This document shows, piece after piece, positions 3,226 to 37,285 of a stretch of 64,000 bases of DNA (position 1 is the stretch's first letter; every line of letters begins with the position of its first letter). The DNA is from Tubulanus polymorphus. Taxonomy: Eukaryota; Animalia; Nemertea. Under the pieces are notes generated by a model that did not search any database, was not told the origin of the DNA, and was given only the letters and a program-made list of their open reading frames with translations. The translations under genes were made by a program, and so were the position numbers. The stretch lies in contig NC_134030.1 of assembly GCF_964204645.1 (NCBI RefSeq), forward strand, positions 2,091,355 to 2,155,354. Reading direction: 5' to 3'.

Positions 3226-3409
3226 TAGATTACAGAAAAAAGAACCACAAAACAATTTGTAGCGAACAACTAAACCACGAATAGATCAGTAGTTGTGATC
3301 AATAGTTCAATACGTACATGTATCATATAAGTAAACATAAGTAAGCAAAGACTTCAACCAATTATCAAACACCAAGTTGACTCGGCTCCTCTACAGATCC
3401 TCATACCAT

Positions 3410-3415
3410 TTTATT
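3410..3415 (-). terminator. Candidate polyadenylation signal AATAAA (alternative at 3621-3626; copy 2 at 41424-41429)
   Basis: Lies after the last minus-strand acceptor (4652) and is followed ~35 nt downstream by GU-rich ttggtgtttg. Confidence 0.45.
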
Positions 3416-3711
3416 GAAATAAATATGTATTTACAATAACTAATGAATTAAAACAGTCGTAATTAACGAACACCGACAGAAGTCAACACGAATAAATCAA
3501 GGTCAGTCATCATGTTATGTCAATATTCAAGCACACTACAGAACTGACTGCTGCATTTCAGTTCCACCTCAAAACAACATCAAAAACTCTTTAGAAACAA
3601 TCAAAGATATTCTAACTTGTTTTATTTAAATTAAAATAAAATTCGAATTGAACACACATGTTCATACACAGGGTCAGTTGCACCCAGACAATAATTCTCC
3701 AAGTCTTAACG

Positions 3712-4572
3712 TGCATTAGAGTTCTCCAAGTTCGAGCAACACATTAGAGTTCTCCAAGTTCAAGCAACACATTAGTGTTCTCCAAGTTCCAGCAACGCAT
3801 TAGTGTTCTCCAAGTTCCAGCAATGCATTAGAGTTCTCCAAGTTCCAGCAACGCACTAGAGTTCTCCAAGTTCCAGCAACGCATTAGAGTTCTCCAAGTT
3901 CCAGCAACGCATTAGAGTTCCAAGTTCGAGCAACGCATTAGAGTTCTCCAAGTTCGAGCAACGCATTAGAGTTCCAAGTTCCAGCAACGCATTAGTGTTC
4001 TCCAAGTTCGAGCAACGCATTAGTGTTCTCCAAGTTCCAGCAACACATTAGAGTTCTCCAAGTTCCAGCAACGCATTAGAGTTCTCCAAGTTCCAGCAAC
4101 GCATTAGAGTTCCAAGTTCCAGCAATGCATTAGAGTTCCAAGTTCCAGCAACGCATTAGAGTTCCAAGTTCCAGCAACGCATTAGAGTTCTCCAAGTTCC
4201 AGCAACGCATTAGAGTTCCAAGTTCCAGCAATGCATTAGAGTTCCAAGTTCCAGCAATGCATTAGTGTTCTCCAAGTTCGAGCAACACATTAGAGTTCTC
4301 CAAGTTCCAGCAACGCATTAGAGTTCTCCAAGTTCCAGCAACGCATTAGAGTTCCAAGTTCCAGCAATGCATTAGAGTTCCAAGTTCCAGCAACGCATTA
4401 GAGTTCCAAGTTCCAGCAACGCATTAGAGTTCTCCAAGTTCCAGCAACGCATTAGAGTTCCAAGTTCCAGCAATGCATTAGAGTTCCAAGTTCCAGCAAC
4501 GCATTAGAGTTCCAAGTTCCAGCAACGCATTAGAGTTCTCCAAGTTCCAGCAACGCATTAGTTCCAAGTTCG
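3712..4572. repeat. 26/28-bp minisatellite (gcattagagtt[ct]ccaagttccagcaac), block 1
   Basis: About 31 tandem monomers of two length classes differing by a CT dinucleotide. The copy-2 block (41727-42168) is shorter. Confidence 0.97.
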
Positions 4573-4651
4573 ACCCCGCAAATGGTCAACAGATGCCATC
4601 TGAATATCAAAGCCAACATCGTGTTTGATTAGATGTTTCACATATTTTCAC

Positions 4652-6946
4652 CTACAAGACAATCAAAAGGTTAAAAAAGGATATTTTCAACAATCACTAA
4701 ATCAATAAAATAAATTTATCTATTACAATATATACCTGATTTATAGTCAATTCAGATTCATGACTCATCCATTCATTCTCGAGCAACGCATTAGTGTTCT
4801 CCAAGTTCCAGCAATGCATTAGAGTTCTCCAAGTTCCAGCAACGCACTAGAGTTCTCCAAGTTCCAGCAACGCATTAGAGTTCTCCAAGTTCCAGCAACG
4901 CATTAGAGTTCCAAGTTCCAGCAACGCATTAGTGTTCTCCAAGTTCGAGCAACGCATTAGAGTTCTCCAAGTTCCAGCAACGCATTAGAGTTCTCCAAGT
5001 TCCAGCAACGCATTAGAGTTCCAAGTTCCAGCAACGCATTAGAGTTCCAAGTTCCAGCAACGCATTAGAGTTCCAAGTTCCAGCAACGCATTAGAGTTCT
5101 CAAAGTTCCAGCAACGCATTAGAGTTCCAAGTTCCAGCAACGCATTAGAGTTCCAAGTTCCAGCAATGCATTAGAGTTCTCCAAGTTCCAGCAACGCATT
5201 AGAGTTCCATATTCCAGCAACGCATTAGAGTTCTCCAAGTTCCAGCAACGCATTAGAGTTCCAAGTTCCAGCAATGCATTAGAGTTCTCCAAGTTCCAGC
5301 AACGCATTAGAGTTCCAAGTTCCAGCAACGCATTAGAGTTCTCAAAGTTCCAGCAACGCAAATGGTCAACAGATGCCATCTGAATATCAAAGCCAACATC
5401 GTGTTTGATTAGATGTTTCACATATTTTCACCTACAAGACAATCAAACAACGAACTTAAAAGGATATTTTCAACAATCACTAAATCAATAAAATAAATCT
5501 ATCTATTACAATATATACCTGATTTATAGTCAATTCAGATTCATGACTCATTCATTCTTTCATCCTTTCAACTAAGGGATGATATTCCTGTGAATCCCTG
5601 AAGGTATTTTTCTATCTTGTAGTAACATACCATCTCTAGATATTTCCTTATTACAACAGGAAAACTCAAAATATGAATAATTTTGAATAATGTAAGACTT
5701 GAAAATTGATGTAATTTTCAATATCATACCTGATTTATAGTCAGTTCAGACTAATGACTCGACGTTCCTTTGCAACTGTTAACTTTGTGACTCTAGTTTG
5801 CAGCTTGACTGAGGCAGTTGACTCAGTACTACTGATCTCAGTGGTGAAATTCATCTAACTGATGCCCGGTGATTGTCTCATCTCTGGTGACAATCAGTTC
5901 TGTGGTAAACCTCTCCACATTTGCTACAAGAAAACAAAAAATATGAATAATTTTCATTTTCATGACTGACTTATAGTCTGTTCAATGACTGATCCTTCCT
6001 CTGGTATTGCGTTTCTAACGATTTGCTACAAGAAAACATGTAACAAACCATCATAATGTTTGGGACTTTTCCTAAAACAAGAAATCAATGTTATCTGTAT
6101 CTTAACATACCTGATTTATAGTCAGTTCAGACTAATGACTCGACGTTCCTTTGGAACTGTTAACTTTCCTTGTGACTCAGTAACTTTGTTCCCGACTTTG
6201 ACGGAGATCATTCACTACCACTGATCTGAGTGGTGACATTCATCTAACTAATGCCTGGTGATTGTCTCATCTCTGGTGACAATCAGTTCTGTGGTAAACC
6301 TCTCCACATTTGCTACAAGAAAACAAAAAATATGAATAATTTTCATTTTCATGACTGACTTATAGTCTGTTCAATGACTGATCATTCCTCTGGTATTGTC
6401 TTTCTAACGATTTGCTACAAGAAAACATGTAACAAACCATCATAATGTTTGGGACTTTTCCTAAAACAAGAAATCAATGTTATCTGTATCTTAACATACC
6501 TGATTTATAGTCAGTTCAGACTAATGACTTGACGTTCCTTTGGAACTGTTAACTTTCCTTGTGACTCAGTAACTTAGTTCCCGACTTTGACGGAGATTTC
6601 TCACTACTACTGATCTGAGTTGTGACATTCATCTAACTAATGCCAGGTGATTGTCTCATCTCTGGTGACACTTAGTTCGTCAATATTTGCTACAAGAAAA
6701 CACAAAACATGAATAACTCTTAATTTTGAGACATTGAAAATTGATCCCTATTTCAATATCATACCTGATTTATAGTCAGTTCAGACTAATGACTCGACAT
6801 TCCTCTGGAACTATTAACTTTCCTTTGCGACTGTAACTTTTTTGCTGACTTTGACGGAGATGAATCAGTACCACTGATCTCAGTGGCGACCTTCATCTAA
6901 CGGATGGCTGGTGATTGTCTCATCTCTGGTGACTCAGTTCAGTGGA
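4652..6946 (-). other. Tandem array of homologous non-coding exons and short introns
   Basis: Exons 6500-6689, 6111-6312, 5730-5923 and 4736-5431 begin after tcttgtAG and end ...GACTATAAATCAG|GTAT. Introns are 75-87 nt. Exon 5730-5923 has stops in all three frames. Confidence 0.75.
4780..5360. repeat. 26/28-bp minisatellite, block 2 (inside predicted exon 4736-5431)
   Basis: Same monomers. Arose by duplication of an exon+intron module. Copy 2 at 42371-42931. Confidence 0.97.
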
Positions 6947-9900
6947 CCAGCGATATTTCAAAGATTCAACCACCAAATAGCTATCAATGGATAGCTCTTT
7001 TGAATATTTTTACAATCTAAACGTTTAGTCGTAATGAGGACATTCGGGAAGCAGAATCAATCGTAATTCAGCAACATATGATACAATATGTACAGAACCA
7101 ACACCAGCGACATTTCAAAGATGCAACCACCACAAAGCTATCAATGGATAGCTCTTTTGAATATTCATACATTTAAAACGTAAAGTCGCAATAAGGACGA
7201 TCAGGAAACAAAATAATCAATCCCAATTCATCGACATATATTACAATATATACACTGAACCAACACCAGCGACATTTCAATGATACAACCACCACAAAGC
7301 TATCGATGGATAGCTCCTTTGAATATTTATACATTAAAAACTTTAAGTCGTTATAAGGACGATCAGGAAACATAAGAATCATAATTCAGCGATATATGAT
7401 ACAATATGTACACAGAACCAACACCAGCGACATTTCAATGATACAACCACCACAAAGCTATCGATGGATAGCTCCTTTGAATATTTATACATTAAAAACT
7501 TTAAGTCGTTATAAGGACGATCAGGAAACATAAGAATCATAATTCAGCGATATATGATACAATATGTACACAGAACCAACACCAGCGACATTTCAATGAT
7601 ACAGCCACCACAAAGCTATCATTGGATAGCTCCTTTGAATATTTATACATTAAAAACTTTATGTCGTTATAAGGACGATTAGGAAACATAAGAATCATAA
7701 TTCAGCGATATATGATACAAATGTACACAGAACCAACACCAGCGACATTTCAAAGATGCAACCACCACAAAGCTATCAATGGACAGCTCTTTTGAATATT
7801 CATACATTTAAAACGTAAAGTCGCAATAAGGACGATCAGGAAACAAAATAATCAATCCCAATTCATCGACATATATTACAATGTATACACTGAACCAACA
7901 CCAGCGACATTTCAATGATACAACCACCACAAAGCTATAGATGGATAGCTCCTTTGAATATTTATACATTTAAAACTTTATGTCGTTATAAGGATGATCA
8001 GGAAACAGAATCAATCAAAATTCAGCGACATATGATACAATATGTACACAGAACCAACACCAGCGACATTTCAAAGATGCAACCACCACAAAGCTATCAA
8101 TGGATAGAGCTCTTTTGAATATTCATACATTTAAAATGTTAAGTCGCAATAAGGACGATCAGGAAACAAAATAATCCCAATTCACCGACATATATTACAA
8201 TATATACATTGAACCAACACCAGCGACATTTCAATGATACAACCACCACAAAGCTATCATTGGATAGCTCTTTTGAATATTTTTAAATTCTAAACATGAA
8301 GTCCTAATGAGGACAATCGGGAAGCAGAAACAATTATAATTCAGCGACATATGATTCAATATATACAGAACCAACACCAGCGACATTTCAAAGATACAAC
8401 CACCACAAAGCTATCGATGTATAGCTCCTTTGAATATTTATAAATTTAAAACTGTGTCGTTATAAGGATGATCAGGAAAGAGAATCAATCATAATTCAGC
8501 GACACATGATGCAATATATACAGAACAAAGACCAGCGACATTTCAATGATACAACCACCACAAAGCTATCGATGGATAGCTGCTTTGAGTATTTATACAT
8601 TTAAAAAATTGAGTCGTTATAAGGACGATCAGGAAACAAAATAATCAATCCAAATTCACCGACATATATTACAATATATACATTGAACCAACACCAGCGA
8701 CATTTCAATGATACAACCACCACAAAGCTATCATTGGATAGCTCCTTTGAATATTTAAACATTTGAAACTTTAAGTCGTTATAAGGACGATCAGGAAACA
8801 TAAGAATCATAATTCAGCGACATATGATACAATATGTACACAGAACCAACACCAGCGACATTTCAAAGATGCAACGACCACAAAGCTATCAATGGATAGC
8901 TCTTTTGAATATTTATACATTTAAAACTTTAAGTCGTTATAGGACAATCAGGAAACATAAGAATCATAATTCAGCGACATATGATACAATATGTACACAG
9001 AACCAACACCAGCGACATTTCAAAGATGCAACCACCAAAAAGCTATCAATGGATAGCTCTTTTGAATAATTTAGAATTCAAATTTAAAATTAAAGGAGGT
9101 CATCAGTGTTGTAACACACTGATAATTCAGCTCGTTTGTCACGTTTCTACATGACAGTTGAAGAAGGAAGGAGGAGACTCCTTAACTCATTATCACCCCA
9201 AAACAGAGTGTATCAATTAACACCCAGCAGCAGGATTAAAGGAGGTCATCAGTGTTGTAACACACTGACAATTCAGTCCGTTTGTCACGTTTCTACATAA
9301 CAGTTGAAGAACTGTGTCATTATAAGGATAATCAGGAAACAGAATCAATCATAATTCAGCGACATATGATACAATATATACAGAACCAACACCAGCGACA
9401 TTTCAATGATACAACCACCACAAAGCTATCGATGGATAGCTCTTTTAAATATTCATACATTAAAAACTTTTAGTCGTTATAAGGACGATCAGGCAACATA
9501 AGAACCAACACCAGCGACATTTCAAAGATGCAACCACCACAAAGCTATCATTGGATAGCTCTTTTGAATATTCATACATTTGAAACATAAAGTCGCAATA
9601 AGGACGATCAGGAAACAAAATAATCAATCCCAATTCACGGACATATATTACAATAAATACATTGAACCAACACCAGCGACATTTCAATGATACAACCACC
9701 ACAAAGCTATCATTGGATAGCTCCTTTGAATATTTAAATATTTGAAACTTTAAGTCGTTATAAGAACGATCAGGAAACAGAATCAATCAAATTTAGCGAC
9801 ATATGATACAATATGTACACAGAACCAACACCAGCGACATTTCAAAGATACAATCACCACAAAGCTATCGATGGATAGCTCATTTGAATATTTATAAATT

Positions 9901-12900
9901 TAAAACTGTGTCGTTATAAGGATGATCAGGAAACAGAATCAATCCCAATTCACCGACATATATTACAATATATACATTGAACCAACACCAGCGACATTTC
10001 AATGATACAACCACCACAAAGCTATCATTGGATAGCTCTTTTGAATATTTTTAAATTCTAAACATGAAGTCCTAATGAGGACAATCGGGAAGCAGAAACA
10101 ATTATAATTCAGCGACATATGATTCAATATATACAGAACCAACACCAGCGACATTTCAAAGATACAACCACCACAAAGCTATCGATGGATAGCTCCTTTG
10201 AATATTTATAAATTTAAAACTATGTCGTTATAAGGATGATCAGGAAACAGAATCAATCATAATTCAGCGACATATGATGCAATATATACAGAACCAACAC
10301 CAGCGACATTTCAATGATACAACCACCACAAAGCTATCGATGGATAGCTGCTTTGAGTATTTATACATTTAAAAGTTTAAGTCGTTATAAGGACGATCAG
10401 GAAACAAAATAATCAATCCAAATTCACCCCAAATCATTTCATATATACATTGAACCAACACCAGTGACATTTCAATGATACAACCACCACAAAGCTATCG
10501 TTGGATAGCTCCTTTGAATATTTAAACATTTGCAACTTTAAGTCGTTATAAGGACGATCAGGAAACATAAGAATCATAATTCAGCGACATATGATACAAT
10601 ATGTACACAGAACCAACACCAGCGACATTTCAATGATGCAACCACCACAAAGCTTTCAATGGATAGCTCTTTTGAATATTTATACATTTAAAACTTTAAG
10701 TCGTTATAGGACAATCAGGAAACATAAGAATCATAATTCAGCGACATATGATACAATATGTACACAGAACCAACACCAGCGACATTTCAAAGATGCAACC
10801 ACCAAAAAGCTATCAATGGATAGCTCTTTTGAATATTCATCCATTTAAAATGTAAAGTCGCAATAAGGACGATCAGGAAACAAAATAATCAATCCCAATT
10901 CACCGACATATATTACAATATATACATTGAACCAACACCGGCGACATTTCAATGATACAACCACCACAAAGCTATCATTGGATAGCTCCTTTGAATATTT
11001 AAACATTAAAAACTTTAAGTCGTTATAAGGACGATCAGGAAACATAAGAATCATAATTCAGCGATATATGATACAATATGTACACAGAACCAACACCAGC
11101 GACATTTCAATGATACAGCCACCACAAAGCTATCATTGGATAGCTCCTTTGAATATTTATACATTAAAAACTTTATGTCGTTATAAGGACGATTAGGAAA
11201 CATAAGAATCATAATTCAGCGATATATGATACAAATGTACACAGAACCAACACCAGCGACATTTCAAAGATGCAACCACCACAAAGCTATCAATGGATAG
11301 CTCTTTTGAATATTCATACATTTAAAACGTAAAGTCGCAATAAGGACGATCAGGAAACAAAATAATGAATCCCAATTCACCGACATATATTAAAATATAT
11401 ACAATGAACCACCACCAGCGACATTTCAAAAATCCAACCACCACAAAGCTATCGATGGATAGCTCCTTTGAATATTTATACATTAAAAACTTTAAGTCGT
11501 TATAAGGACGATCAGGAAACATAAGAATCATAATTTAGCGATATATGATACAATATGTACACAGAACCAACACCAGCGACATTTCAAAGATGCAACCACC
11601 ACAAAGCTATCAATGGATAGCTCTTTTGAATAATTTAGAATTCAAATTTAAAATTAAAGGAGGTCATCAGTGTTGTAACACACTGATAATTCAGCTCGTT
11701 TGTCACGTTTCTACATGACAGTTGAAGAAGGAAGGAGGAGACTCCTTAACTCATTATCACCCCCAAAACAGAGTGTATCAATTAACACCCAGCAGCAGGA
11801 TTAAAGGAGGTCGTCAGTGTTGTAACACACTGATAATTCAGTCCGTTTGTCACGTTTCTACATGACAGTTGAAAAAGGAAGGAGGAGACTCCTGCACTCA
11901 ATATCACCCCAAAACAGAGTGTATCAGTTAACACACAGCAGCAAGCAGCAGTATTAAAGGAGGTCATCAGTGTTTTAACACACTGATAATTCAGTCCGTT
12001 TGTCACGTTTCTACAAAACAGTTGAAGAACTGTGTCATTATAAGGATAATCAGGAAACAGAATCAATCATAATTCAGCGACATATGATGCAATATATACA
12101 GAACCAACACCAGCGACATTTCAAAGATACAACCACCACAAAGCCATCAATGGATAGCTCCTTTGAATATTTATAAATTTAAAACTGTGTCGTTATAAGG
12201 ATGATCAGGAAACAGAATCAATCATAATTCAGCGACATATGATGCAATATATACAGAACCAAGACCAGCGACATTTCAATGATACAACCACCACAAAGCT
12301 ATCGATGGATAGCTGCTTTGAGTATTTATACATTTAAAAGTTTAAGTCGTTATAAGGACGATCAGGAAACAAAATAATCAATCCAAATTCACCGACATAT
12401 ATTACAATATATACATTGAACCAACACCAGCGACATTTCAATGATACAACCACCACAAAGCTATCATTGGATAGCTCCTTTGAATATTTATAAATTTAAA
12501 ACTGTGTCGTTACAAGGATGATCAGGAAACAGAATCAATCATAATTCAGCGACATATGATACAATATATACAGATCCAACACCAGCGACATTTAATGATA
12601 CAACCACCACAAGGCTATCGATGGATAGCTGCTTTGAGTATTTATACATTTAAAACTTTAAGTCGTTATAAGGACGATTAGGAAACGTAAGAATCATAAT
12701 TCAGCGATATATGATACAATATGTACACAGAACCAACACCAGTGACATTTCAAAGATGCAACCACCACAAAGCTATCAATGGATAGCTCTTTTGAATAAT
12801 TTAGAATTCAAATTTAAAATTAAAGGAGGTCATCAGTGTTGTAACACACTGATAATTCAGCTCGTTTGTCACGTTTCTACATGACAGTTGAAGAAGGAAG

Positions 12901-15900
12901 GAGGAGACTCCTTAACTCATTATCACCCCAAAACAGAGTGTATCAATTAACACCCAGCAGCAGGATTAAAGGAGGTCATCAGTGTTGTAACACACTGATA
13001 ATTCAGCTCGTTTGTCACGTTTCTACATGACAGTTGAAGAAGGAAGGAGGAGACTCCTTAACTCATTATCACCCCAAAAACAGAGTGTATCAATTAACAC
13101 CCAGCAGCAGGATTGAAGGAGGTCGTCAGTGTTGTAACACACTGATAATTCAGTCCGTTTGTCACGTTTCTACATGACATTTGAAAAAGGAAGGAGGAGA
13201 CTCCTGCACTCAATATCACACCAAAACAGAGTGTATCAGTTAACACACAGCAGCAAGCAGCAGTATTAAAGGAGGTCATCAGTGTTTTAACACACTGATA
13301 ATTCAGTCCGTTTGTCACGTTTCTACAAAACAGTTGAAGAACTGTGTCATTATAAGGATAATCAGGAAACAGAATCAATCATAATTCAGCGACATATGAT
13401 GCAATATATACAGAACCAACACCAGCGACATTTCAAAGATACAACCACCACAAAGCTATCAATGGATAGCTCCTTTGAATATTTATAAATTTAAAACTGT
13501 GTCGTTATAAGGATGATCAGGAAACAGAATCAATCATAATTCAGCGACATATGATGCAATATATACAGAACCAACACCAGCGACATTTCAATGATACAAC
13601 CACCACAAAGCTATCGATGGATAGCTGCTTTGAGTATTTATACATTTAAAAGTTTAAGTCGTTATAAGGACGATCAGGAAACAAAATAATCAATCCAAAT
13701 TCACCGACATATATTACAATATATACATTGAACCAACACCAGCGACATTTAATGATACAACCACCACAAAGCTATCGATGGATAGCTGCTTTGAGTATTT
13801 ATACATTTAAAACTTTAAGTCGTTATAAGGACGATTAGGAAACATAAGAATCATAATTCAGCGATATATGATACAATATGTACACAGAACCAACACCAGC
13901 GACATTTCAAAGATGCAACCACCACAAAGCTATCAATGGATAGCTCTTTTGAATAATTTAGAATTCAAATTTAAAATTAAAGGAGGTCATCAGTGTTGTA
14001 ACACACTGATAATTCAGCTCGTTTGTCACGTTTCTACATGACAGTTGAAGAAGGAAGGAGGAGACTCCTTAACTCATTATCACCCCAAAAACAGAGTGTA
14101 TCAATTAACACCCAGCAGCAGGATTAAAGGAGGTCGTCAGTGTTGTAACACACTGACAATTCAGTCCGTTTGTCACGTTTCTACATGACAGTTGAAGAAG
14201 GAAGGAGGAGACTCCTGCACTCAATATCACCCCAAAACAGAGTGTATCAGTTAACACACAGCAGCAAGCAGCAGTATTAAAGGAGGTCATCAGTGTTGTA
14301 ACACACTGATAATTCAGTCCGTTTGTCACGTTTCTACATAACAGTTGAAGAACTGTGTCATTATAAGGATAATCAGGAAACAGAATCAATCATAATTCAG
14401 CGACATATGATACAATATATACAGAACCAACACCAGCGACATTTCAAAGATCCAACCACCACAAAGCTATCAATGGATAGCTCCTTTGAATATTTAAAAA
14501 TTTAAAACTGTGTCGTTATAAGGATGATCAGGAAACAGAATCAATCAAAATTCAGCGACATATGATACAATATGTACACAGAACCAACACCAGCGACATT
14601 GCAAAGATGCAACCACCACAAAGCTATCAATGGATAGCTCTTTTGAATATTCATACATTTCAAACGTAAAGTCGCAATAAGGACGATCAGGAAACAAAAT
14701 AATCAATCCCAATTCACCGACATATATTACAATATATACATTGAACCAACACCAGCGACATTTCAATGATACAACCACCACAAAGCTATCATTGGATAGC
14801 TCCTTTGAATATTTAAACATTTAAAACTTTAAGTCGCAATAAGGATGATCAGGAAACAAGTCCTAATGAGGACAATCGGGAAGCAGAAACAATCATAATT
14901 CAGCGACATATGATTCAATATATACAGAACCAACACCAGCGACATTTCAATGATACAACCACCACAAAGCTATCAATGAAAAGATGCTTTGAATATCAAT
15001 ACATTCAAAACTTTAAGTCGTTATAAGGACGACCAGGAAACAGAATCAATCATAAGTCAGTGATATATGATACAATATGTACGCAGAACCAACACCAGCG
15101 ACATTTCAATGATACAACCACCACAAAGCTATCGATGGATAGCTCCTTTGAATATTTATAAATTTAAAACTGTGTCGTTATAAGGATGATCAGGAAACAG
15201 AATCAATCATAATTCAGCGACATATGATGCAATATATACAGAACCAACACCAGCGACATTTCAATGATACAACCACCACAAAGCTATCGATGGATAGCTG
15301 CTTTGAGTATTTATACATTTAAAAGTTTAAGTCGTTATAAGGACGATCAGGAAACAAAATAATCAATCCAAATTCACCGACATATATTACAATATATACA
15401 TTGAACCAACACCAGCGACATTTCAATGATACAACCACCACAAAGCTATCATTGGATAGCTCCTTTGAATATTTATAAATTTAAAACTGTGTCGTTACAA
15501 GGATGATCAGGAAACAGAATCAATCATAATTCAGCGACATATGATACAATATATACAGAACCAACACCAGCGACATTTAATGATACAACCACCACAAAGC
15601 TATCGATGGATAACTGCTTTGAGTATTTATACATTTAAAAGTTTAAGTCGTTATAAGGACGATCAGGAAACAAAATAATCAATCCAAATTCACCGACATA
15701 TATTACAATATATACATTGAACCACCACCAGCGACATTTCAAAGATGCAACCACCACAAAGCTATCGATGGATAGCTGCTTTGAGTATTTATACATTTAA
15801 AACTTTAAGTCGTTATAAGGACGATTAGGAAACATAAGAATCATAATTCAGCGATATATGATACAATATGTACACAGAACCAACACCAGCGACATTTCAA

Positions 15901-17915: not shown

Positions 17916-17929
17916 ATTCAAATTTAAAA

Positions 17930-19390: not shown

Positions 19391-19394
19391 AGGT

Positions 19395-19545
19395 TGATTT
19401 AGCAGTAATTTAGCCACAGTGTTTTGTAACACTTAACTTCCGTCACCACCAATTGATTTAGCAGTAATTCACCCAGAGTGTTTTTATTTTTAACTTTTAA
19501 CTTTCATCACTACCAATTGATTTAGCAGTAATTCACCCACTTTTA
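19395..19545. repeat. Three ~60-bp repeats (ttgatttagcagtaatt..ccac/cag)
   Basis: Three tandem degenerate copies; also at 55747-55895. Confidence 0.85.
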
Positions 19546-22714: not shown

Positions 22715-23075
22715 TACTGCAACCAACGACCTGTGAGGGGAAATTATGCTCAATCATTGAGATGATTGCTCAGAGCTGCAACCAATGAAGTGAAATCCAA
22801 TCAATGAGGGAAAAGTATACTGCAACTGATTAGGGGAAGTGAACTGCAAACCTGTGAGGGGAAATTATGCTCAATCATTGAGATGATTGAGCATAGCTTC
22901 AACCAATGAAGTGAAATCCAATCAATGAGAGAAAAGTATACTGCAACTGATTAGGGGAAGTGAACTGCAAACCTGTGAGGGGAAATTATGCTCAATCATT
23001 GATATGATTGAGCATAGCTTCAACCGATGATGGTAAATAATACTTCGAACCAGTGAGAGGTAATTATACCGCAAT
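22715..23075. repeat. 121-bp tandem repeat with a perfect 13-bp hairpin (TATGCTCAATCAT-TGAG-ATGATTGAGCATA)
   Basis: Period 121 (22745, 22866, 22987). 3 copies here, 4 at 25200-25640, 4 at 58710-59145, 1 at ~61270 and a truncated one at ~63450. Confidence 0.93.
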
Positions 23076-23828
23076 CCACGAGGGATCATGCAAACCAGTG
23101 GTAGTTATAGACACTTGCAATCTAGCAGATTAGAGATCAAAGGAAGCAACATCACTCCAATCCTTATTTCTTGACGTAAAATTAAATGCTCTTTTGTCTT
23201 TGATAAATTGTATTTGAAATAAAACACTACAATTTTCTTAACTAGAATCTTCTTTCAAATGTTAAACAAAAAGGAGGAAGGACTAAATCTAATGGTATCA
23301 ATGCTACAAATGTATGTAAAAAGTGAAAAGTAATAGTTTGAAACCAAGCGTGAATGCATTCATTCTGTTGTATTGAATAAAGTGAGATTTGATGACAATT
23401 ACGAACATATATTAAAATTGGCTCTAAAATAGTTTCAATTAAAAAATAGATATCTATTAGTTTGAAAATTTAAAACGTTTTCAAGAAAAGCAACTCTTAA
23501 AAATGTACAAATAATTGTTTAAAAAGTTTTTAAGAAAATATTCCGGAATGTAATATGTAGTAAAAATTAAAATCATAAAAATATATATACACTAATAAAA
23601 AGATAAAAACGAATAACTATTTACAAATTTACAATATTTACAAGAGAGAAATAAAAACTGCTATTAACAAATTTACAATATTTACAAGAGAGGAATAAAA
23701 ACTAATATATTTACAAATTTACAATATTTACAAGAGAGAAAGAAAAGAGAGAGAGAAAGAAAAGAGAGAGAGAGAGGGGGAAACGGAGGGAAATAAAAAC
23801 TACTATTTACAAATTTACAATATTTACA

Positions 23829-23861
<33 letters not shown>

Positions 23862-26433: not shown

Positions 26434-26466
<33 letters not shown>

Positions 26467-27164
26467 AAGAGAGAAGGAAGAGAGATGAGGGAGAGAGAGA
26501 GGAGAGAGGAGGGAGAGAGAGGAGGGAGAGGAGAGAGGAGGGAGAGAGGAGGGAGAGAGAGGAGGGAGGAGAAAGGAAAGGGGTGAGAGGAAGAGAAGAG
26601 AGAGAGGAGAGAGTTAGTGGGTTAGAGAGAGAGGAAGAGAGAGTTAGTGGGTTAGAAAAAGAGAGAGAGTTAGTGGGTTAGAGAAAGAGGAAGAGAGAGT
26701 TAGTGGGTTAGAGAAAGAGGGAAAGGATAGAGAGAGGGAAAGGATAGAGGGGGAAATGATAGAGACAGAGAGGGAAAGGATAGAGAGACAGAGAAAAAGA
26801 ATAGAGACAGAGAAAGAAAGGACAGAGACAGGGAGGGAAAGCATAGAGACAGAGAGGGAAAGGATAGAGACAGAGAGGGAAAGGATAGAGACAGGTAGAA
26901 AGAAGGGGTGATAAAAACGATAAAACATATGGGTAAAAACAATAAAACAAATGATAAAACATATGGGTAAAATGATAAAAAATGATAAAAACTGTTAAAA
27001 AGAGGCAGTTTAACGTCATACCACAGGACAAACAGATAAAAATCACTAGTAAAATGTATGGATAAAACGTATTGTTAAAAAGAGGCAGTTTAACGTCATA
27101 CCACAGGACAACTTGTAAACAGAGGTACACTAGCAATACTACTCATGTTTGTAGGTAAAGTATT

Positions 27165-27440
27165 GTCAATCATTATCGGAACCAAAGTGATTTCAGAATG
27201 GAATAACTGGGTCAGGCCAATCACTCACTCGCTGATCATCAATTACTGGTACTACACAACCAAAGAAAGAGTGTTTACCACGTGGTATTTTAGGCCAGGT
27301 CTTACCTCCCAATAATAGTGCCACCTATATTCTATTTAGCTTTTTGTGCGTTGATTTGTACATTGATACATCCTCAATCCGCTAACACAAACCCAGGTCG
27401 TAAACCCTTCATTGGTCTCTTAACTACCAATATCAAGAAA
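27165..27440 (-). promoter_or_regulatory. Possible internal promoter or regulatory island
   Basis: Unique, more GC-rich patch with GGCCAATCA (CCAAT 27217-27221), the palindrome TACCACGTGGTA (E-box, 27276-27287) and further CCAAT/ATTGG near 27410-27432. Also contains a minus-strand donor-like GAG|GTAAG at 27305. Confidence 0.3.
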
Positions 27441-27482
27441 ACCGGGCGTAATTAAAACTGCTGTTAGCGCTTAAATATTTTC

Positions 27483-28832
27483 AATGAACTGAGAGTAATT
27501 TCATGAATGATGAATTTACCCTCAGTGCATTCATTGTTTTAATGATGATCCTGAGAGTAATTTCAACACTGATGAATTCATTCTCAGTTCATTCATTGTT
27601 TTAATGATGATCCTGAGAGTAATTTCAACAATGATGAATTTACCCTCAGTTCATTCATTGTTTTAATGATGATCCTGAGAGCAATTTCAACAATGATGAA
27701 TTTACCCCCCTGAGTTCATTCATTGTTTTAATGATGATCCTGAGAGTAATTTCAACACTGATGAATTCATTCTCAGTTCATTCATTGTTTTAATGATGAT
27801 CCTGAGAGTAATTTCAACAATGATGAATTTATTCTCAGTTCATTCATTGTTTTAATGATGATCCTGAGAGTAATTTCAACAATGATGAATTTACCCTCAG
27901 TTCATTCATTGTTTTAATGATGATCCTGAGAGTAATTTCAACACTGATGAATTCATTCTCAGTTCATTCATTGTTTTAATGATGATCCTGAGAGTAATTT
28001 CAACAATGATGAATTTACCCTCAGTTCATTCATTGTTTTAATGATGATCCTGAGAGTAATTTCAACAATGATGAATTCATTCTCAGTTCATTCATTGTTT
28101 TAATGATGATCCTGAGAGTAATTTCAACAATGATGAATTTACCCTCAGTTCATTCATTGTTTTAATGATGATCCTGAGAGTGATTTCAACAATGATGAAT
28201 TCACCCTCAGTTCATTCATTGTTTTAATGATGATCCTGAGAGTAATTTCAACAATGATGAATTCATTCTCAGTTCATTCATTGTTTTAATGATGATCCTG
28301 CGAGTAATTTCAACAATGATGAATTTATTCTCAGTTCATTCATTGTTTTAATGATGATCCTGAGAGTAATTTCAACAATGATGAATTTACCCTCAGTTCA
28401 TTCATTGTTTTAATGATGATCCTGAGAGTAATTTCAACAATGATGAATTTACCCTCAGTTCATTCATTGTTTTAATGATGATCCTGAGAGTAATTTCAAC
28501 AATGATGAATTTATTCTCAGTTCATTCAATGTTTTAATGATGATCCTGAGAGCAATTTCAACAATGATGAATTTATTCTCAGTTCATTCATTGTTTTAAT
28601 GATGATCCTGAGAGTAATTTCAACAATGATGAATTCATTCTCAGTTCATTCATTGTTTTAATGATGATCCTGAGAGTAATTTCAACAATGATGAATTCAT
28701 TCTCAGTTCATTCATTGTTTTAATGATGATCCTGAGAGTAATTTCAACAATGATGAATTTACCCTCAGTTCATTCATTGTTTTAATGATGATCCTGAGAG
28801 TAATTTCAACAATGATGAATTCACCCTCAGTC
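27483..28832. repeat. 62-bp tandem array (~21-22 copies), each monomer an imperfect ~57-nt palindrome
   Basis: Period 62 (27541, 27603...). ctgagagtaatttca-acaatga-tgaatttaccctcag stem extended by aatgatga/tcattcatt. Confidence 0.97.
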
Positions 28833-29339
28833 CATCACATTCTAAAATGTTACTATTTTATTCAGTGAAAATCTCTGAACTGCATAAATAGAAGATCTTA
28901 AACGGGATTATTGATTAATGTACCCGAGTGTAACTTATAACATAAATTGACCCTCAGTTTATCAGAGGTTTATACTTTACTTAAGTTAACAGCATAAACT
29001 CAAACTCAACTCGACTTTAATCAACTGGAACGAATTAGATTTGAAACATAGAAACGTGAAAAAAAACTTATAAGTAGTAAAAAGGTAGAAAATAAAATAT
29101 AAGAAAAAGTTCTCAATCACATTTCATATTTACTAAGCCTATATCGACTTGAGTTAATGCTCTTTATGCGTGCATTATATACATCATGGGCCTTTTATAT
29201 AACCTCTATTTATATCCGTTTTGTGGACCACGTAATTCAGATCAAACCTGGGCCTTCAGTTATTCCATCCATGAATCACTTGGGTTCGCATATACTGATA
29301 GTCAAATATAAGATATTTCATCTAATCAATGTTTTAGTT

Positions 29340-29960
29340 AGTATTAAAATACAGATAAAAATTGTTCTAAAAGAATATATACAAATAAAATAGTTTTAAA
29401 AATATATATATATAAATAAGATATTTTTAAAATATATATAAATAAAATAGTTTTTAAAATATATACAAATAAAAAAGTTTTTAAAATATATACAAATACA
29501 ACAGTTTAAAAGATAATTAAAGATAAAATATATACAAATGAAAAAGTTTTAAAATTCAGATATTAAGATAGTTTCTAGATATAATAGTTATTTTAAAATT
29601 AAGACAAAATACTTTCTTTAATAGTTTTAAATTCAGATAAATTAGTTTTTAGATATTATAGTTACAAATCCACAAAAAGGCTTATATAATAATCAATCCT
29701 TGAATAGATTAAAGGATAATTTAAGATAAAATACATACAAATGAAATAGTTTTAAAATTCAGATAAGATAGTTTTTAGATATAATAGTTATTTTTAAATT
29801 AACATAAAATACTTTCTTTAATAGTTTAAAATTCAGATAAATTAGTTTTTAGATATTATAGTTACTTTAAAATGGAGATAATTTAATATAGTCTAGAACA
29901 TTCTTAAAAAAGTTTTCAGAATTACTAGTTTAGAAGTAATAATGAAATAGTTTTGGAATT
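29340..29960. repeat. Very AT-rich degenerate ~28-bp repeats plus a ~205-bp-period duplication
   Basis: aaaatatatacaaataaaatagttttt repeats; 29510-29665 recurs at 29715-29865. Confidence 0.8.
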
Positions 29961-30312
29961 TCAGCACTGAAGGACTCAAAAATGGCCAAATTAACTAACT
30001 GTTCAACATGTGCAGTATGACTGGATCTCAGTCAGTGAAAATCTATCAATGATGCCGGTTTGAGTTTGGATTTTGTGACCTCTTCACAACAATAATTGCA
30101 AAGTAGCTGAGAAACTACAAGTAGCTACATTTCATGTAATAATTAGTAGATGATATCACATATCTTAATACAACTGATGTCCTTTTTGGGGACCAAGGCT
30201 TCTCCTGAGGAATTAATCCTACCATATGAATGATCGAGATATTGAAAACAACTTCTTTGTCAATTTCTTCTCAATTGGTATGAACTTAAAACAATTTTCC
30301 TTTTTTACACAA

Positions 30313-30628
30313 TCTCCTCTATCATATATCTCCATTAACTCCTGTCTCATATCTCCATAAACTCCTCTATCATATCCACATAAACTCCTCTCTCATATCT
30401 ACATTAACTCCTCTCTCATATCTCCATTAACTCCTCTCTCATATCTACATAAACTCCTCTCTCATATCTCCATAAACTCCTCTATCATATCTACATAAAC
30501 TCCTCTATCATATCTACATAAACTCCTCTATCATATCTACATAAACTCCTCTCTCATATCTACATAAACTCCTCTCTCCATAAACTCCTCTCTCATATCT
30601 CCATAAACTCCTCTCTCATATCTCTCAT
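30313..30628. repeat. 23-bp C/T-rich minisatellite (catatctccataaactcctctct), ~13 copies
   Basis: actcctc recurs at 30361, 30384, 30407, 30430... Confidence 0.95.
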
Positions 30629-31494
30629 GCCTTATTGATTTCAACAAGAGATGCAGAACTAATTTAACAAGAATTTTGAATCCAAACCTTGATTCTGGTG
30701 ATCGTTAGAATCGGTAGAGATTAATATAAATCAATAAAACTTCACTCAACTGTGATAACAACTAATTTTCCAATCCGAGATCTTTATTTGATACTTTCTT
30801 TATCAGAGATTCTTAATCATTGCAATTTTGCAGATTTTTTGCATTATTCTATTCTATCCTATGTTCAATTATGAACTGATAAATTCATGCATTGAAGACT
30901 GATCGAGTGAACTTTCACACCTTAGAAATTTAATGAAATTGATTACCGTAGTCTTTGCTGTGGTTTCCTATCATGCGCAATTTTTTATCTGGACGATATA
31001 TGTATTTCTATTCCTTATGAGTAAATATTTTAAATTCCTCCGATCACATTTGAAGGACTTCTTTCCGTTGTTGAGCATTAGATATTGACATTCCAATCAT
31101 TTCAAGTTTTCCTGGGATATCAATTATTTAATCTTTAACTCTATGAAATCAAGTAAATAACAATTCCATGGTTTTACACTTGAAGTAAGAACATCATAGC
31201 ATTTGGGGGGGGGGAGGGCAACATGGAACATCGAACAATCCATTTCAATGTAGTTTCCTAAAGAATCGCTGTTCCATCTCCATGTTCCAAGTTTGATAAG
31301 GAATCACATTTTGTGAATCATAGCCGTTCTTCTCGATTTGAAAAAAAATCCACTTTTTTTCAAAAATCCACTTTTTATTGTAGAGATTGATTTCCTGCAT
31401 ATCCCAAAAGACATTTGCAAAGGCTGACCATGGCATTAGAATAGATGACTGTCACAATTAAATAGATGGTATGGATGGTTACTGCTGCAAACAA

Positions 31495-31800
31495 GTAGTA
31501 ATGCAAGGATGGTAAATGCTTCAGCATCATGGGAAGCACAATGAACCTTAGTTAATAAGGTATTGTAAAAGAAGTAATGCAAGGGTGTTAAATGCTTCAT
31601 TGTGAGAAGCAAAATGAACCTTAGTGAATAAGGTGTTGTGAAAGATGTATCGCAAGACTCGAATTTCAGAACGCAAAAAGGCAAAAGAAGTAATGCGAGG
31701 ATTGTAAATGCTTCAGCATCGTGAGAAGCAAAATGAACCTTAGTTGATACGGTATTGTAAAGAAGGTATAACAAGGATGGTAAATGCTGAAGCATCGTGA
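31495..31800. repeat. Four degenerate ~76-bp repeats (gtaatgcaaggatggtaaatgcttcagcatc..gaagcaaaatgaaccttagtt)
   Basis: Visible tandem copies at ~31497, 31574, 31690 and 31766. Confidence 0.85.
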
Positions 31801-32479
31801 GACATCCTGATTGAGCTTGACGGCTGAGCAAGGCGGTGCCCCAACTGGAGTGCCCGATGTTGATACCTGGGCAGGTGCTTTAATAGTATCATTATCATCC
31901 TCTTTATCACTACTTGCTTCCTTCAAATTTGGCTGACTCAGCAGGGAAGGACGAGCCACATGTTCAGGATTAGAATTTATCCTTTTTTCTCGAAAAAACA
32001 GACCTCTGTGACTATATGTGGATGATTGGTGACCAACAGTCACATCAGTTTCAGCTTCCATCAGCCTTTTTTCTTCACATAAATATTTTGATAGAGAAGG
32101 AACCTTCCAAAACCATACGCCTGGATTTTCTGTCTCTTGGAAGACATTCTTCGGATCGTTAATTTAAGCATTATTTGCCTTAAATTCAACGCACAATATG
32201 AACCATATCACCATTGACAACAGATGAGGCCGTATTAAATTGCGCGCCGAATACCGAACTAAATGATCGATTGTTGAAAGTTGTCAATGCTCCGCATGCA
32301 CAGAAGCACAGTTCACCAACTGACGGAGGAGCAAACTCAAAAGGAGTTTCAATAATGTAAGGAAGAGTTTGTAACAGACCTTTCATATAGATGTCCTATA
32401 CCGGAAGGGCTCTGCTGCGAGTCAAGTGGCTTCAGACTGATCTCTTAGTCTTTTGTGATGTTTTCTAATAATTGTAAAT
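31666..32479 (-). pseudogene. Possible decayed coding exon of unknown origin
   Basis: Follows a strong acceptor (tttttttcattccAG at 32480). Protein-like fragments occur in shifting frames (MKGLLQTLPYIIETPFEF..., KNVFQETENPGVWFWKVPSLSKYLCEEKRLMEAETD...). No family recognised. Confidence 0.3.
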
Positions 32480-34880
32480 CTGGAATGAAAAAAAAAAACA
32501 TTAAGTATCATGTATATTAAACATTAATGACACGTCCACGTATAACTTACTTTCTATTGATTAGACACAGCTTTGAATATGAATAATATGATGAATATTT
32601 CACAATTTGGAACATTTTGAAACCCGGAAATGAATTTACTTCCTCAAGTTATTTCTCATCCACCAGAGCCTCTTACTCACTATCCAATTCAATTCAATAC
32701 AAACTTTATTCACCATTTGATTTGTTTGCAAATTCAATAAATTCTTGAGTGCTGACAAAAATTGCAGCATTCATTAAAATGAAAAATTTATACTCAAACA
32801 ATTGAGAAATCTAATTCTAATGATATTAGATGTTTCAGGTGAATAACTGATGATATTCAAAATAATTGAGATTGAGACAATTTTGAGTTTTTGGAAATCC
32901 AATAATGTGGAGATATGAGATAGAATAATTTGAGATGTTTGTCAAAAATAATTAAGAATTTGAGATATCTAATATGAAATGATTGAGATTGATAAAGTAG
33001 TGTTTGATACTTACTCAAATCAACAAAATGCGCTGAAGGGAGCAGGCTCCAACTTCAGGACCTTGGCTTGCACCAGCACCATCAAACCAGTAAGAAGACT
33101 TTTTTCTGACGCTGTGGTTGATGTATTAGTTGTAGATGTCGTATCTGTGGTTGTTGACTGCTGTTGACTTGTCTGCTTTTGACAACTGCTGCTGCTGCTG
33201 CTGCTGCTACTACTGAAATGTAGAAAGAGATTTCATAAAAAATCTCGAGAATTGAAATGATAAATCATAAGAAATAATGTCGTCGAAATTTATGTAACCC
33301 AGTGAAAAATACATTTAATTATCAATTAATCATCACTATCTAAATATTAGATATTCAAAAGAAGCCACCAGAATTAAATGGGTCACAATTTCAAAATCAA
33401 TTGGCGGCGCTTCGAATGAAAGATTTCTATAGATTTGAGTCATGGTTGAATAGACTGAGCTGTCTATGTATTACACCTAGGCATGTCAGCTAGCCGCTTT
33501 AGCGCGAATATTGCTACACCAGAAAACTTAAGCAAAAATTAAAAATTGCATATACTTTCTTAATTACTACCACTATCTACATTGAAAATCAATATATATA
33601 TATATGTTATGGAAATAACGATTTCTTCAAAAAATCAAAAAGTAACACGGAAAGTGCTTATAATTAGTAAGATAACCAAATTTACACACATTTCACACCT
33701 ATTTATGATTTGTACTTGCGGACGTTTGAAATTAACTTGCGTAAACAGTACAACGAATATATTTTGATAGAGAAGGAAACTTCCAAAACTATACGCCTGC
33801 TCTTGGAAGACATTCTTCTGGATTGTTAATTTAATCTTTATTTGCCTCAAATTCAACGCACAATATGAACCGTATCACCATTGACAACAGATAAGGCCGT
33901 ATTAAATTGCGCGCCGAATACCGAACTAAATGATAATGAAATCGATTGTTGAAAGTTGTCAATGCTCCGCATGCACAGGAGAAGCACAGTTCACCAACTG
34001 ACGGAGGAGCAAACTCAAAAGGAGTCTCAATAATGTAAGGAAGAGTTTGTAACAGACCTTTCATATAGATTGTCCAATACCGGAAGGGCTCTGCTGCGAG
34101 TCAAGTGTCTTCAGACTGATCTCTTGATGTTTTCTAATAATTGTATATCTGGAATGAAAAAAAAATCATTAAGTATCATGTATATTAAACATTAATGACA
34201 CGTCCACTTATAACTTACTTTCTATTGATTAGACACAGCTTTGAATATGAATAATATGATGAATATTTCACAATTTGGAACATTTTGACCGGATTTTGAA
34301 ACCCGGAAATGAATTTACTTCCTCAAGTTATTTCTCATCCACCAGAGCCTCTTACTCACTATCCAATTCAATTCAATCCAAACTTTATTCACCATTTGAT
34401 TTGTTTGCAAATTCAATAAATTCTTGAGTGCTGACAAAAATTGCAGCATTCATCAAAATGAAAAATTTTTACTCGTACAATTGAGAAATCTTATTCTAGT
34501 GATATTAGATGTTTGAGGTGAATAACTGATGATATTCAAAATAATTGAGATTGAGACAATTTTGAGTTTTTGGAAATCCAATCATGTGGAGATTTGAGAT
34601 AGAATAATTTGAGATGTTTGTCAAAATTAATTGAGAATTTGAGATATCTAATATGAAATGATTGAGATTGATAAAGAAGAGTTTGATACTTACTCAAATC
34701 AACAAAATGCGCTGAAGGAAGCAGGCTCCAATTTCAGGACCTTGGCTAACACCAGCGCCATTAAACCAGTAAGAAGACTTTTTTCTGACGCTGTGGTTGA
34801 TGAATTAGTTGTAGATATCGTATCTGTGGTTAATTGTTACAGTTGTTGTTGATTGCTGTTGACTTGTCTGCTTTTGACAA

Positions 34881-34928
<48 letters not shown>

Positions 34929-37168
34929 CGGCTACTGGAAGGTAGAAAGAGAAAATAAAAAATCAAGAGAATTGAAGTAATTATGTCGTCGAGGTTTATG
35001 TAACCCAGTGAAAAATAATTGTAAATACATTTAATTATCAATTAATCATTGCTATCTAAATATAAGATATTCAAAAGAAGACACCAGAATTAAATGGGTC
35101 GCAATTTCAAAATCAATTGGCGGCGCTTCGAATGAAAGGTTTCTATAGATTCGAGTCATGGTTGAATAGACTGAGCTGTCTATGTATTACACCTAGGCAT
35201 GTCAGCTTGCCGCTTTAGCGCGAATATTGCTACACCAGAAAACTTAAGCAATAATTAAAAATTGCATATACTTTCTTAATTACCACTATCTACATTGAAA
35301 ATCAATATATATATATATGTTATGGAAATAACGATTTCTTCAAAAAATCAAAAAGTAACACAGAAAGTGCTTATAATTAGTAAGATAACCAAATTTACAC
35401 ACATTTCACACCTATTTATGATTTGTACTTGCGGACGTTTGAAATTAACTTGCGTAAACAGTACAACGAATATATTTTGATAGAGAAGGAACCTTCCGAA
35501 ACTATACGCCTGGATTTTCTGTCTCTTAGAAGACATTCTTCTGGATTGTTAATTTAAGTTTTATTTGCCTCAAATTCAACGCACAATATGAACCGTATCA
35601 CCATTGACAACAGATGAGGCCGTATTAAATTGCGCGCCGTATACCGAACTAAATGATAATGAAATCGATTGTTGAAAGTTGTCAATGCTCCGCATGCACA
35701 GGAGAAGCACAGTTCACCAACTGACGGAGGAGCAAACTCAAGAGGAGTTTCAATAATGTAAGGAAGAGTTTGTAACAGACCTTTCATATAGATGTCCAAT
35801 ACAGGAAGGGCTCTGCTGCGAGTCAAGTGGCTTCAGACGGATCTCTTAGTCTTTTGTGATGTTTTCTAATAATTGTAAATCTGGAATGAAAAAAAAAAAC
35901 ATTAAGTATCATGTATATTAAACATTAATGACACGTCCACGTATAACTTACTTTCTATTGATTAGACACAGCTTTGAATATGAATAATATGATGAATATT
36001 TCACAATTTGGAACATTTTGAAACTCGGAAATGACTTTACTTCCTCGAGTTATTTCTCATCCACCAGAGCCTCTTACTCGCTATCCAATTCAATTCAATC
36101 CAAACTTTATTCACCATTTGATTTGTTTGCAAATTCAATGAATTCTAGAGTGCTGACAAAATTTGCAGCAGTCATCAAAATGAAAAATTTTTACTCGAAC
36201 AATTGAGAAATCTTATTCTAGTGATATTAGAGGTTTGAGGTGAATAACTGATGATATTCAAAATAATTGAGATTGAGACAATTTTGAGTTTTTGGAAATC
36301 CAATAATGTGGAGATATGAGATAGAATAATTTGAGATGTTTGTCAAAAATAATTAAGAATTTGAGATATCTAATATGAAATGATTGAGATTGATAAAGTA
36401 GTGTTTGATACTTACTCAAATCAACAAAATGCGCCGAAGGAAGCAGGCTCCAATTTCAGGACCTTGGCTTGCACCAGCACCATCAAACCAGTAAGAAGAC
36501 TTTTTTCTGACGCTGTGGTTGATGTATTAGTTGTAGATGTCGTATCTGTGTTTAATTGTTACAGTTGTTGTTGATTGCTGTTGACTTGTCTGCTTTTGAC
36601 AACTGCTGCTGCTGCTGCTGCTACTACTGAAATGTAGAAAGAGATTTCATAAAAAATCTCGAGAATTGAAATGATAAATCATCAGAAATAATGTCGTCGA
36701 AATTTATGTAACCCAGTGAAAAATACATTTAATTATCAATTAATCATCACTATCTAAATATTAGATATTCGAAAGAAGCCACCAGAATTAAATGGGTCAC
36801 AATTTCAAAATCAATTGGCGGCGCTTCGAATGAAAGATTTCTATAGATTCGAGTCATGGTTGAATAGACTGAGCTGTCTATGTATTACACCTAGGCATGT
36901 CAGCTTGCCGCTTTAGCGCGAATATTGCTACACCAGAAAACTTAAGCAATAACTAAAAATTGCATATACTCTCTTAATCACCACTATCTACATTGAAAAT
37001 CAATAGATATGTTATGGAAATTACGATTTCTTCAAAAAATCAAAAAGTAACACGGAAAGTGCTTATAATTAGTAAGATAACCAAATTTACACACATTTCA
37101 CACCTATTTATGATTTGTACTTGCGGACGTTTGAAATTAACTTGCGTAAACAGTACAACGAATATTTT
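32082..37168. repeat. Triplicated ~1.7-kb module containing two exon/intron junction sets and a (CTG)n tract
   Basis: Copies ~32082-33758, 33759-35470 and 35471-37168 (ORF offsets 33582/35295/36993). Minus-strand exons 33015-33212, 34694-34934 and 36416-36626 are bounded by tt(t/c)cAG and GA|GTAAGT. 70-71-nt introns are conserved in all three copies. Confidence 0.93.
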
Positions 37169-37198
37169 AGGTGAAATTTACGAGTGAAATGTTCTTAC

Positions 37199-37285
37199 CT
37201 GTAAAATGGCCGGACTTCGAAACGGGGTCAGGCGTGAGCTTTCATACTGACATCGTGACGTCACTGATCCTGACCAATGAAATTT
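37199..37285 (-). promoter_or_regulatory. Putative Pol II promoter and short first exon
   Basis: CpG-rich patch with CCAAT (37274-37278), the CRE palindrome TGACGTCA (37256-37263), YY1-type AAAATGGCC (37203-37211) and a consensus donor CAG|GTAAG at 37199/37198. Confidence 0.55.

Follow-up and report, generated by a model that had tools for sequence, protein, structure and literature searches.

Candidate Pumilio-type 3′ regulatory tails built from satellites in a multicopy ribbon-worm gene family

Long non-coding RNAs (lncRNAs) can arise from pseudogenes, as Xist did from Lnx3, and pseudogenes of the PTENP1 type act as competitors. NORAD, a Pumilio decoy lncRNA of mammals, is a single 5.3-kb unspliced cytoplasmic RNA, present at about 70 copies per cell and carrying at least 17 verified Pumilio sites (PMC4947167). 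Among invertebrates, the long 3′ untranslated region (UTR) of mei-P26 measures 18.5 kb, or 22 kb in D. virilis (PMC5707805), and control of this gene by Nanos and Pumilio is described (PMC3841267). The locus analysed here is a stretch of 64,000 nucleotides of the ribbon worm Tubulanus polymorphus (contig NC_134030.1, here C6:2091355-2155354; hereafter the window), in which a repeat-built unit at 3390-37285 is read from the minus strand. We give about an even chance to the reading that this unit is a member, with a broken open reading frame (ORF), of a multicopy and probably protein-coding family whose genes end in a Pumilio-type 3′ regulatory tail. A first-pass annotation had proposed a dedicated, independently evolved lncRNA. 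The transcription unit is indeed minus-strand, spliced and repeat-built, and its window copies lack an intact long ORF, but an independent, dedicated origin is not supported as stated, as the unit belongs to a family of about 50 members and shares its arrays with members that keep an ORF.

The motif scored, on each strand across 3390-37285, is TGTA[ACT]ATA (UGUAHAUA in RNA), the consensus of the Pumilio response element (PRE). The minus strand holds 110 copies and the plus strand one, against a chance level, by dinucleotide shuffling, of 4.5 on average and 13 at most in 200 shuffles; the first-pass figures of about 110 sense-strand motifs and almost none on the other strand thus proved accurate, and stand up to the shuffled control suggested with them. 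Satellite A (6946-17915, a 158-bp repeat with one motif per monomer) contributes 50 motifs, with U at position 5 in 29 and C in 21. Repeat C (19800-27120, in units of the form PRE-U-UGUAAAUU-PRE) contributes 54, with A at that position in 51 and U in 3. Five UGUAUAUA motifs, all with U at position 5, lie in a 27-bp AT-rich repeat at 29183-29536, and a single motif, UGUAAAUA at 3435, sits beside the distal poly(A) signal. All three permitted bases are therefore in use at position 5, as had been noted. Masking of all repeated 16-mers leaves 8.5 kb with 9 sense and 0 antisense motifs, where the rate in flanking DNA predicts 1.2, so the excess survives repeat collapse but is modest. Bare UGUA in the collapsed sequence is not enriched (46 sense, 56 antisense, 51 expected). 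Directly 3′ of 69 of the 110 motifs, in satellite A and repeat C alike, stands one U followed by a second UGYA core (U-UGYA). With this grammar in common the two families may share an origin, and the three repeat families, counted earlier as independent origins, are not clearly independent.

Similar words occur elsewhere in the genome. An unrelated 23-bp minisatellite at C1:1474543-1475056 has one TGTA(C/T)ATA per unit, on a single strand and with position 5 varying, and would make a useful neutral control or a second case. A dispersed repeat family with 3-5 PRE-type words per 45-80 bases is found at C1:33174, 575995, 2594955, 9779089, 12602962, 13154278 and 14224246.

Satellite A, the core of repeat C and the distal exons are shared with paralogues, always sense to the gene. 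The 25-nt triple-UGUA core of repeat C is present exactly at more than 25 paralogue loci, again always in sense orientation (284 hits versus 0 for the control), and the blocks around it are 66-89% alike at these loci; its commonest local variant alters position 5 of the middle element. In distant members satellite A, placed between the open frame and the poly(A) module, shows 91-94% identity. Of the 73 listed monomers outside C6, 65 retain an intact motif, as do 91% of 120 distinct local monomers, where C and U divide position 5 by 51/49. Among the 152 eight-base windows of satellite A, the PRE is the sole one in which the fifth column varies while the other seven are each at least 95% fixed, a 7+1 pattern whose naive chance is 1.6% and which was picked out post hoc. 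The fixed positions of the PRE reach 98.7% against a mean of 91.9%, yet the PRE ranks 9 of 152 windows. A real, strand-specific excess of the Pumilio consensus, degeneracy at position 5 in satellite A and conservation of the motifs across the family are thus supported.

Three tandem units of 38-43 kb, with 144, 110 and 111 motifs, make up the locus. The second copy of the whole unit (41404-64000, minus strand) runs on to about 74300 and carries a further deletion, and the third lies just upstream of the window. In a search of 268 Mb of genome, seven additional tandem copies appear at C6:3.87-4.09 Mb and collinear copies by the dozen on C1, C2, C3, C4, C5, C8, C9, C10 and C11, for a total of about 50 loci. 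They are 66-89% alike in blocks that include the promoter, exon 1, introns and tail modules; the paralogues were characterised through match tables and motif listings.

What most members have, and the window copies lack, is a long ORF that precedes the PRE region in the same orientation. A remnant of the last 40-50 codons of this frame, at 31813-31960 on the minus strand, matches the ends of open frames at 35 other loci with 42-56% identity, and 34 of these 35 frames are 250-319 codons long. Many of the matches fall on loci and strands already given by DNA homology, and the chance of a stop-free 250-codon frame at the local GC content is about 1e-8 each. At 19 loci the frame could be paired with a poly(A) module, which follows on the same strand at a distance of 16-27 kb in 18 of them and of 2 kb in the other. 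A family member at C1:7504211-7506364, with its poly(A) module only 2 kb past the open frame, offers a natural short-tail control. In the window copies, about 520 bases without paralogue homology (31958-32479) stand in place of the 4-17 kb in which paralogues carry the frame, and part of them resembles, at 77%, a decayed stretch at C7:13218223-13218561. No ATG frame that remains in the window unit exceeds 131 codons, and the longest one differs between copies. The joined exon model was used for ORF lengths, and database searches were run exon by exon. Considered as forkhead (PF00250), nanos (PF05741), homeodomain (PF00046), Speedy (PF11357) or Myb/SANT (PF13837), the paralogue ORF has no listed hit on family loci. 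We read this multicopy family as lineage-specific and probably protein-coding, and its ORF-bearing members would then be the coding parents of the window copies. Across the family, DNA identity in the non-coding tail modules is 75-94% and protein identity at the end of the ORF is 42-56%, so that the tails appear to be the better conserved of the two.

RNA was compared over 28850-33700, to which contigs of four sequencing runs (X1-X4) were aligned. The X1, X2 and X4 contigs cover introns and look like DNA; those of X3 are RNA-like, being nearly exon-only, and one of them joins 33015 to 32479, exactly at a minus-strand GT donor and AG acceptor, so that the intron at 32480-33014 is removed. This junction, found in one run from another individual, indicates that spliced minus-strand RNA of the window type exists, and the splicing claimed in the first-pass annotation is confirmed. 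The X3 variants of exon 2 (33015-33212, CAG-repeat rich and non-coding) fit the upstream cassette type, and X3 exon 3 fits the full-length exon. A coding exon 2 was rejected, with stops in paralogues in one frame and no paralogue match in the other frame tested. Exon 3 is predicted to be a giant exon (6765-32479) of 25.7 kb, or 18.8 kb if a donor at 27305 is joined to 25579. Its X3 coverage runs patchily from 32479 to about 30310, at a contig depth of 4-7 that is not an expression level; over 30307-28850 X3 is empty, including a very AT-rich stretch where X2 and X4 drop out too. A rough splice-site scan finds 27305 as the single strong donor between 32479 and 6765. It is conserved only among the three local copies, and for that reason was rejected both as a family-wide route of array removal and as marking the first exon of a separate downstream gene.

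Beyond the giant exon, small distal exons and short introns are predicted at 5730-6764 (donors 6764, 6499, 6110 and 5729; acceptors 6689, 6312 and 5923), and the exon at 6110-6312 keeps 82-90% identity across the family, with many matches starting at its donor. The promoter and poly(A) signals claimed earlier are all present as candidates: CCAAT at 37274-37278, TGACGTCA at 37256-37263 and an initiator-like TCAGT at 37246-37250 form the core promoter candidates (37246-37278), and the distal AAUAAA lies at 3410-3415. More than 25 paralogues conserve the promoter block 37195-37590, at 69-75%. Should transcription extend to the distal site, most motifs would fall in one exon of 19-26 kb, and the arrays would accordingly be exonic.

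In the reading that we favour, an intact member would consist of at least two non-coding 5′ exons, a frame of 250-319 codons and a modular tail of 16-27 kb. The modules of the tail would be arrays with the PRE-U-UGUA grammar, words like the cytoplasmic polyadenylation element (CPE) and the Musashi-binding element (MBE), and hairpin repeats, followed towards the 3′ end by a few short introns and the conserved poly(A) module. Introns far downstream of a stop codon expose a translated RNA to nonsense-mediated decay; since the predicted tail introns would sit far behind the stop codon, a translated long isoform would be expected to be a decay substrate. The tail would most likely serve as a cis-acting platform on which Pumilio, probably with Nanos- or CPEB-type partners, keeps the long isoform silent, stored or unstable, perhaps in the germline or early embryo. 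The genome encodes one Pumilio locus (PF00806, C8:12.40 Mb) and three nanos zinc-finger loci, and Pumilio is predicted to bind the arrays. When Nanos joins Pumilio, an A/U-rich flank 5′ of UGUA makes the requirements on the 3′ half of the site less strict, and the second UGUA core in repeat C has an A/U-rich 5′ flank and a relaxed 3′ half of the kind that Nanos-Pumilio complexes accept (PMC4995099). CPE, MBE and the Pumilio-binding element (PBE) act jointly in oocytes (PMC3736149, also the source of our Musashi-element and CPE consensus). In the three window copies the ORF would have been removed by deletion or replacement and the arrays expanded by unequal crossover. Because the frame is lost, the arrays are longer and splicing is kept, these copies would be pseudogene-derived lncRNAs. 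Their RNAs could compete for Pumilio only if abundant, titration depending on abundance and location, and a decoy role is possible on those terms. As the arrays were inherited from a family that keeps a 250-319-codon frame upstream, the default reading is a cis-regulatory 3′ region and not a purpose-built sponge.

Several findings weigh against this reading. The X3 coverage stops near 30.3 kb and so lies over no canonical PRE, and an mRNA could terminate ahead of the arrays at one of the candidate proximal poly(A) signals (31374, 30783 and 28857). In satellite A, 70% of columns are likewise at least 95% fixed, and in paralogues the bases flanking the PRE are conserved as much as the PRE; the monomers are also non-independent, and gene conversion can homogenise repeats without selection. 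PRE-dense repeats exist elsewhere in the genome, with 1368 triple-motif clusters against 381 for the control. Among the partner words, those of the MBE are not above background, and CPE counts are inflated because the sense strand is U-rich. The ORF evidence consists of frame length and a 36-residue match whose single E-values are weak (1.6e-5 to 0.26), and database searches found no protein relative of the remnant peptide. The latter had no match in a word-indexed database (91-289 aa candidates only) or in Atlas, a negative exact look-up, and none at E 0.001 among 1.84 billion representatives, blanks that are uninformative because the query is a low-complexity piece of 36-52 residues.

The window copies, or the long isoforms of the family, might instead be abundant cytoplasmic RNAs under selection that act as Pumilio decoys or condensate scaffolds and relieve other mRNAs of repression in trans, as for NORAD, which we consider unlikely. 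Each copy has 110-144 motifs, against 17 in NORAD (PMC4947167), and the window satellite A array, at about 11 kb, is much longer than in the C6:3.9 Mb cluster; moreover, the copies without a long ORF are nonetheless the type spliced in X3, where paralogue signal is slight. The arrays nevertheless predate the loss of the ORF and are common to the presumed coding members, and the X3 contigs, at a low depth of 4-7, end short of them. With its predicted distal introns and small upstream ORFs such an RNA should be prone to decay, in contrast to the unspliced, abundant NORAD, and the copy structure is unstable, as the further deletion in copy 2 illustrates. A combined version, that a ribbon-worm family of about 50 members makes 20-30 kb RNAs that jointly carry thousands of Pumilio/Nanos sites in their satellite-built tails and that its ORF-broken, array-expanded copies have been co-opted as decoys or granule scaffolds, we regard as doubtful.

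UGUA is also the motif of CFIm25, and the proximal poly(A) signals allow an arrangement like that of hsr-omega: a short isoform ending at a proximal poly(A) site (31.4-28.8 kb) would code, and a long nuclear, repeat-rich isoform would be an architectural RNA for several RNA-binding proteins, with UGUA serving CFIm25 or others in place of Pumilio. The hairpin and CU-rich modules, which are free of PREs, are conserved too, and hsr-omega itself combines proximal exons and a short ORF with multiple termination sites and an extended tandem array at the distal end (10.1101/695486). We find this improbable: a full eight-base consensus with degeneracy at the fifth position suits a PUF protein over a four-base reader, and bare UGUA shows no enrichment once repeats are collapsed.

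It would also be possible, with similarly low probability, that the arrays are absent from stable RNA and are gene-associated satellites homogenised by conversion, or DNA elements, whose strand bias reflects head-to-tail amplification of a few founder words. Coverage ends at 30.3 kb, just 9 non-redundant motifs remain after masking, and many of the 1368 triple-motif clusters belong to minisatellites of other kinds or to TA tracts. Within the repeat C word lies GTAAATA, a forkhead-type DNA site. Satellite A and the 29-kb motifs, with C or U at position 5, contain no forkhead sites, however, and the commonest triple-motif variant alters position 5 of the middle element. Conservation of the distal exons and the poly(A) module in diverged members argues for read-through transcription.

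Last, a large mobile or selfish element, or a family of PIWI-interacting RNA (piRNA) precursors, with the window copies as defective elements or sources of silencing small RNAs, is very improbable: about 50 dispersed copies on at least nine chromosomes share a module order, and long piRNA precursors likewise have a giant exon and a U-rich sense strand, but promoter and introns are kept (which also led us to reject a retrocopy origin), no terminal repeats or transposase were seen, the window has no inverted copy able to form a long hairpin, and the Myb/SANT family has no match at the loci. A sharp end of family homology at the poly(A) site, considered as the end of an element, was rejected as a 110-120 bp indel in the window copies.

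The remaining parts of the unit are described from its 5′ end, on the minus strand. Exon 1 (37199-37250, donor CAG/GTAAGA at 37198) is predicted and non-coding, and lies outside the RNA-compared stretch. Between it and exon 2 are two extra tandem cassettes of about 1.7 kb each (33740-37160), which repeat part of intron 1, exon 2, intron 2 and the start of exon 3; cassettes number 3-4 in every one of the three local units. The intronic blocks 32543-32700 and 36720-36923 are 80-87% conserved in paralogues, above exon 2, and the former overlaps a possible 70-nt exon that is skipped in the X3 contig. A 62-bp hairpin-forming satellite without canonical motif (27489-28835) contains several AAUAAA variants and adjoins the candidate proximal poly(A) signal at 28857, and the block beside this satellite, 27163-27379, is 84-89% conserved across paralogues. 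In repeat C, whose 42-nt unit is visible in the genome-wide motif listing, the PRE units are followed by Musashi-like and CPE-like words, along with CU-rich tracts and 121-bp hairpin repeats; a metagenome scan for the repeat C unit gave no match. Satellite B (17932-19146, 147-153 bp) is hairpin-forming, lacks a canonical motif and is also interspersed within satellite A, whose own monomer holds a stem with its main variants in a four-base loop. Each satellite has its own hairpin (6946-17915, 17932-19146, 22729-23030 and 27489-28835), and the 62-bp and 121-bp units fold 4-5 standard deviations below mononucleotide shuffles. Downstream of the small distal exons, a 28-bp repeat fills 3713-5360, where two more weak donor/acceptor pairs are placed at 5517/5436 and 4734/4652. 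The poly(A) module itself (3369-3710, 80-97% identity at 26 loci) combines the single motif and the distal AAUAAA with a GU-rich stretch downstream.

A non-coding 1.3-kb transposon lies between units (38894-40191, also 331-1640) and is not part of the gene; its terminal inverted repeats are about 19 bp, more than 30 copies exist at 93-99% identity, mostly mid-chromosome, and none follows the third unit. The window gave no match in Rfam and tRNA scans, and a Pfam search of ORF fragments in the window gave none above cut-off. Words resembling tRNA A and B boxes precede the promoter at 37536-37610, and others like the B box occur in a 69-bp repeat at 1930-2100; both are probably remnants of short interspersed nuclear elements, since ARAGORN calls no tRNA. 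About 53-56 kb upstream of the window (4225-6984 of the neighbouring stretch L011, minus strand) is a single open frame of 920 codons, with no Pfam match above cut-off and no exact database match.

Should the tails prove exonic, they would be at least as long as the longest 3′ UTRs reported from invertebrates (18.5-22 kb, PMC5707805), and would be so in dozens of genes; they would also represent an undescribed route to post-transcriptional control, in which satellites keep a fixed Pumilio-type grammar. In the literature searched, the coverage of which is incomplete, we came across no multicopy family whose PRE tails are made of satellites. If co-option is true, a NORAD-like function would have arisen from the 3′ region of a coding family, with the parent beside the derivative. 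The coexistence of intact and ORF-broken copies makes the origin of RNA-binding-protein decoy lncRNAs from coding genes testable by comparison of members. If the arrays are not in RNA, the locus would be an ordinary decayed segmental duplicate with gene-associated satellites.

Compared with NORAD, the window unit is alike in being repeat-built, in its many PREs on the sense strand and in the small hairpins that its repeated units contain. It differs in being spliced, about 29 kb long if read through and one of about 50 members, most with a long ORF, and its 110 sites are predicted and were made by tandem amplification. A NORAD orthologue was rejected, the RNA being spliced in X3, multicopy and without Rfam match. 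With Drosophila mei-P26 the family would share an invertebrate mRNA, a very long 3′ region and Pumilio-type control. mei-P26, however, is single-copy with validated isoforms, whereas the worm tails are predicted UTRs of 16-28 kb, satellite-built, with predicted distal introns and in dozens of copies. The likeness to Drosophila hsr-omega (10.1101/695486) is limited to architecture: exons and an intron at the proximal end, a short ORF, multiple termination sites and, distally, extended tandem repeats in which short motifs are conserved. The hsr-omega gene is single-copy, is induced by stress and organises nuclear speckles, whereas the worm paralogues have an ORF of 250-319 codons and the motif is the PUF consensus. 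As in pseudogene-derived lncRNAs, the ORF is lost, transcription, splicing and regulatory sequence would persist, and repeats expand; in contrast to them, the worm copies, with their putative function, stand side by side with the parent family in one genome.

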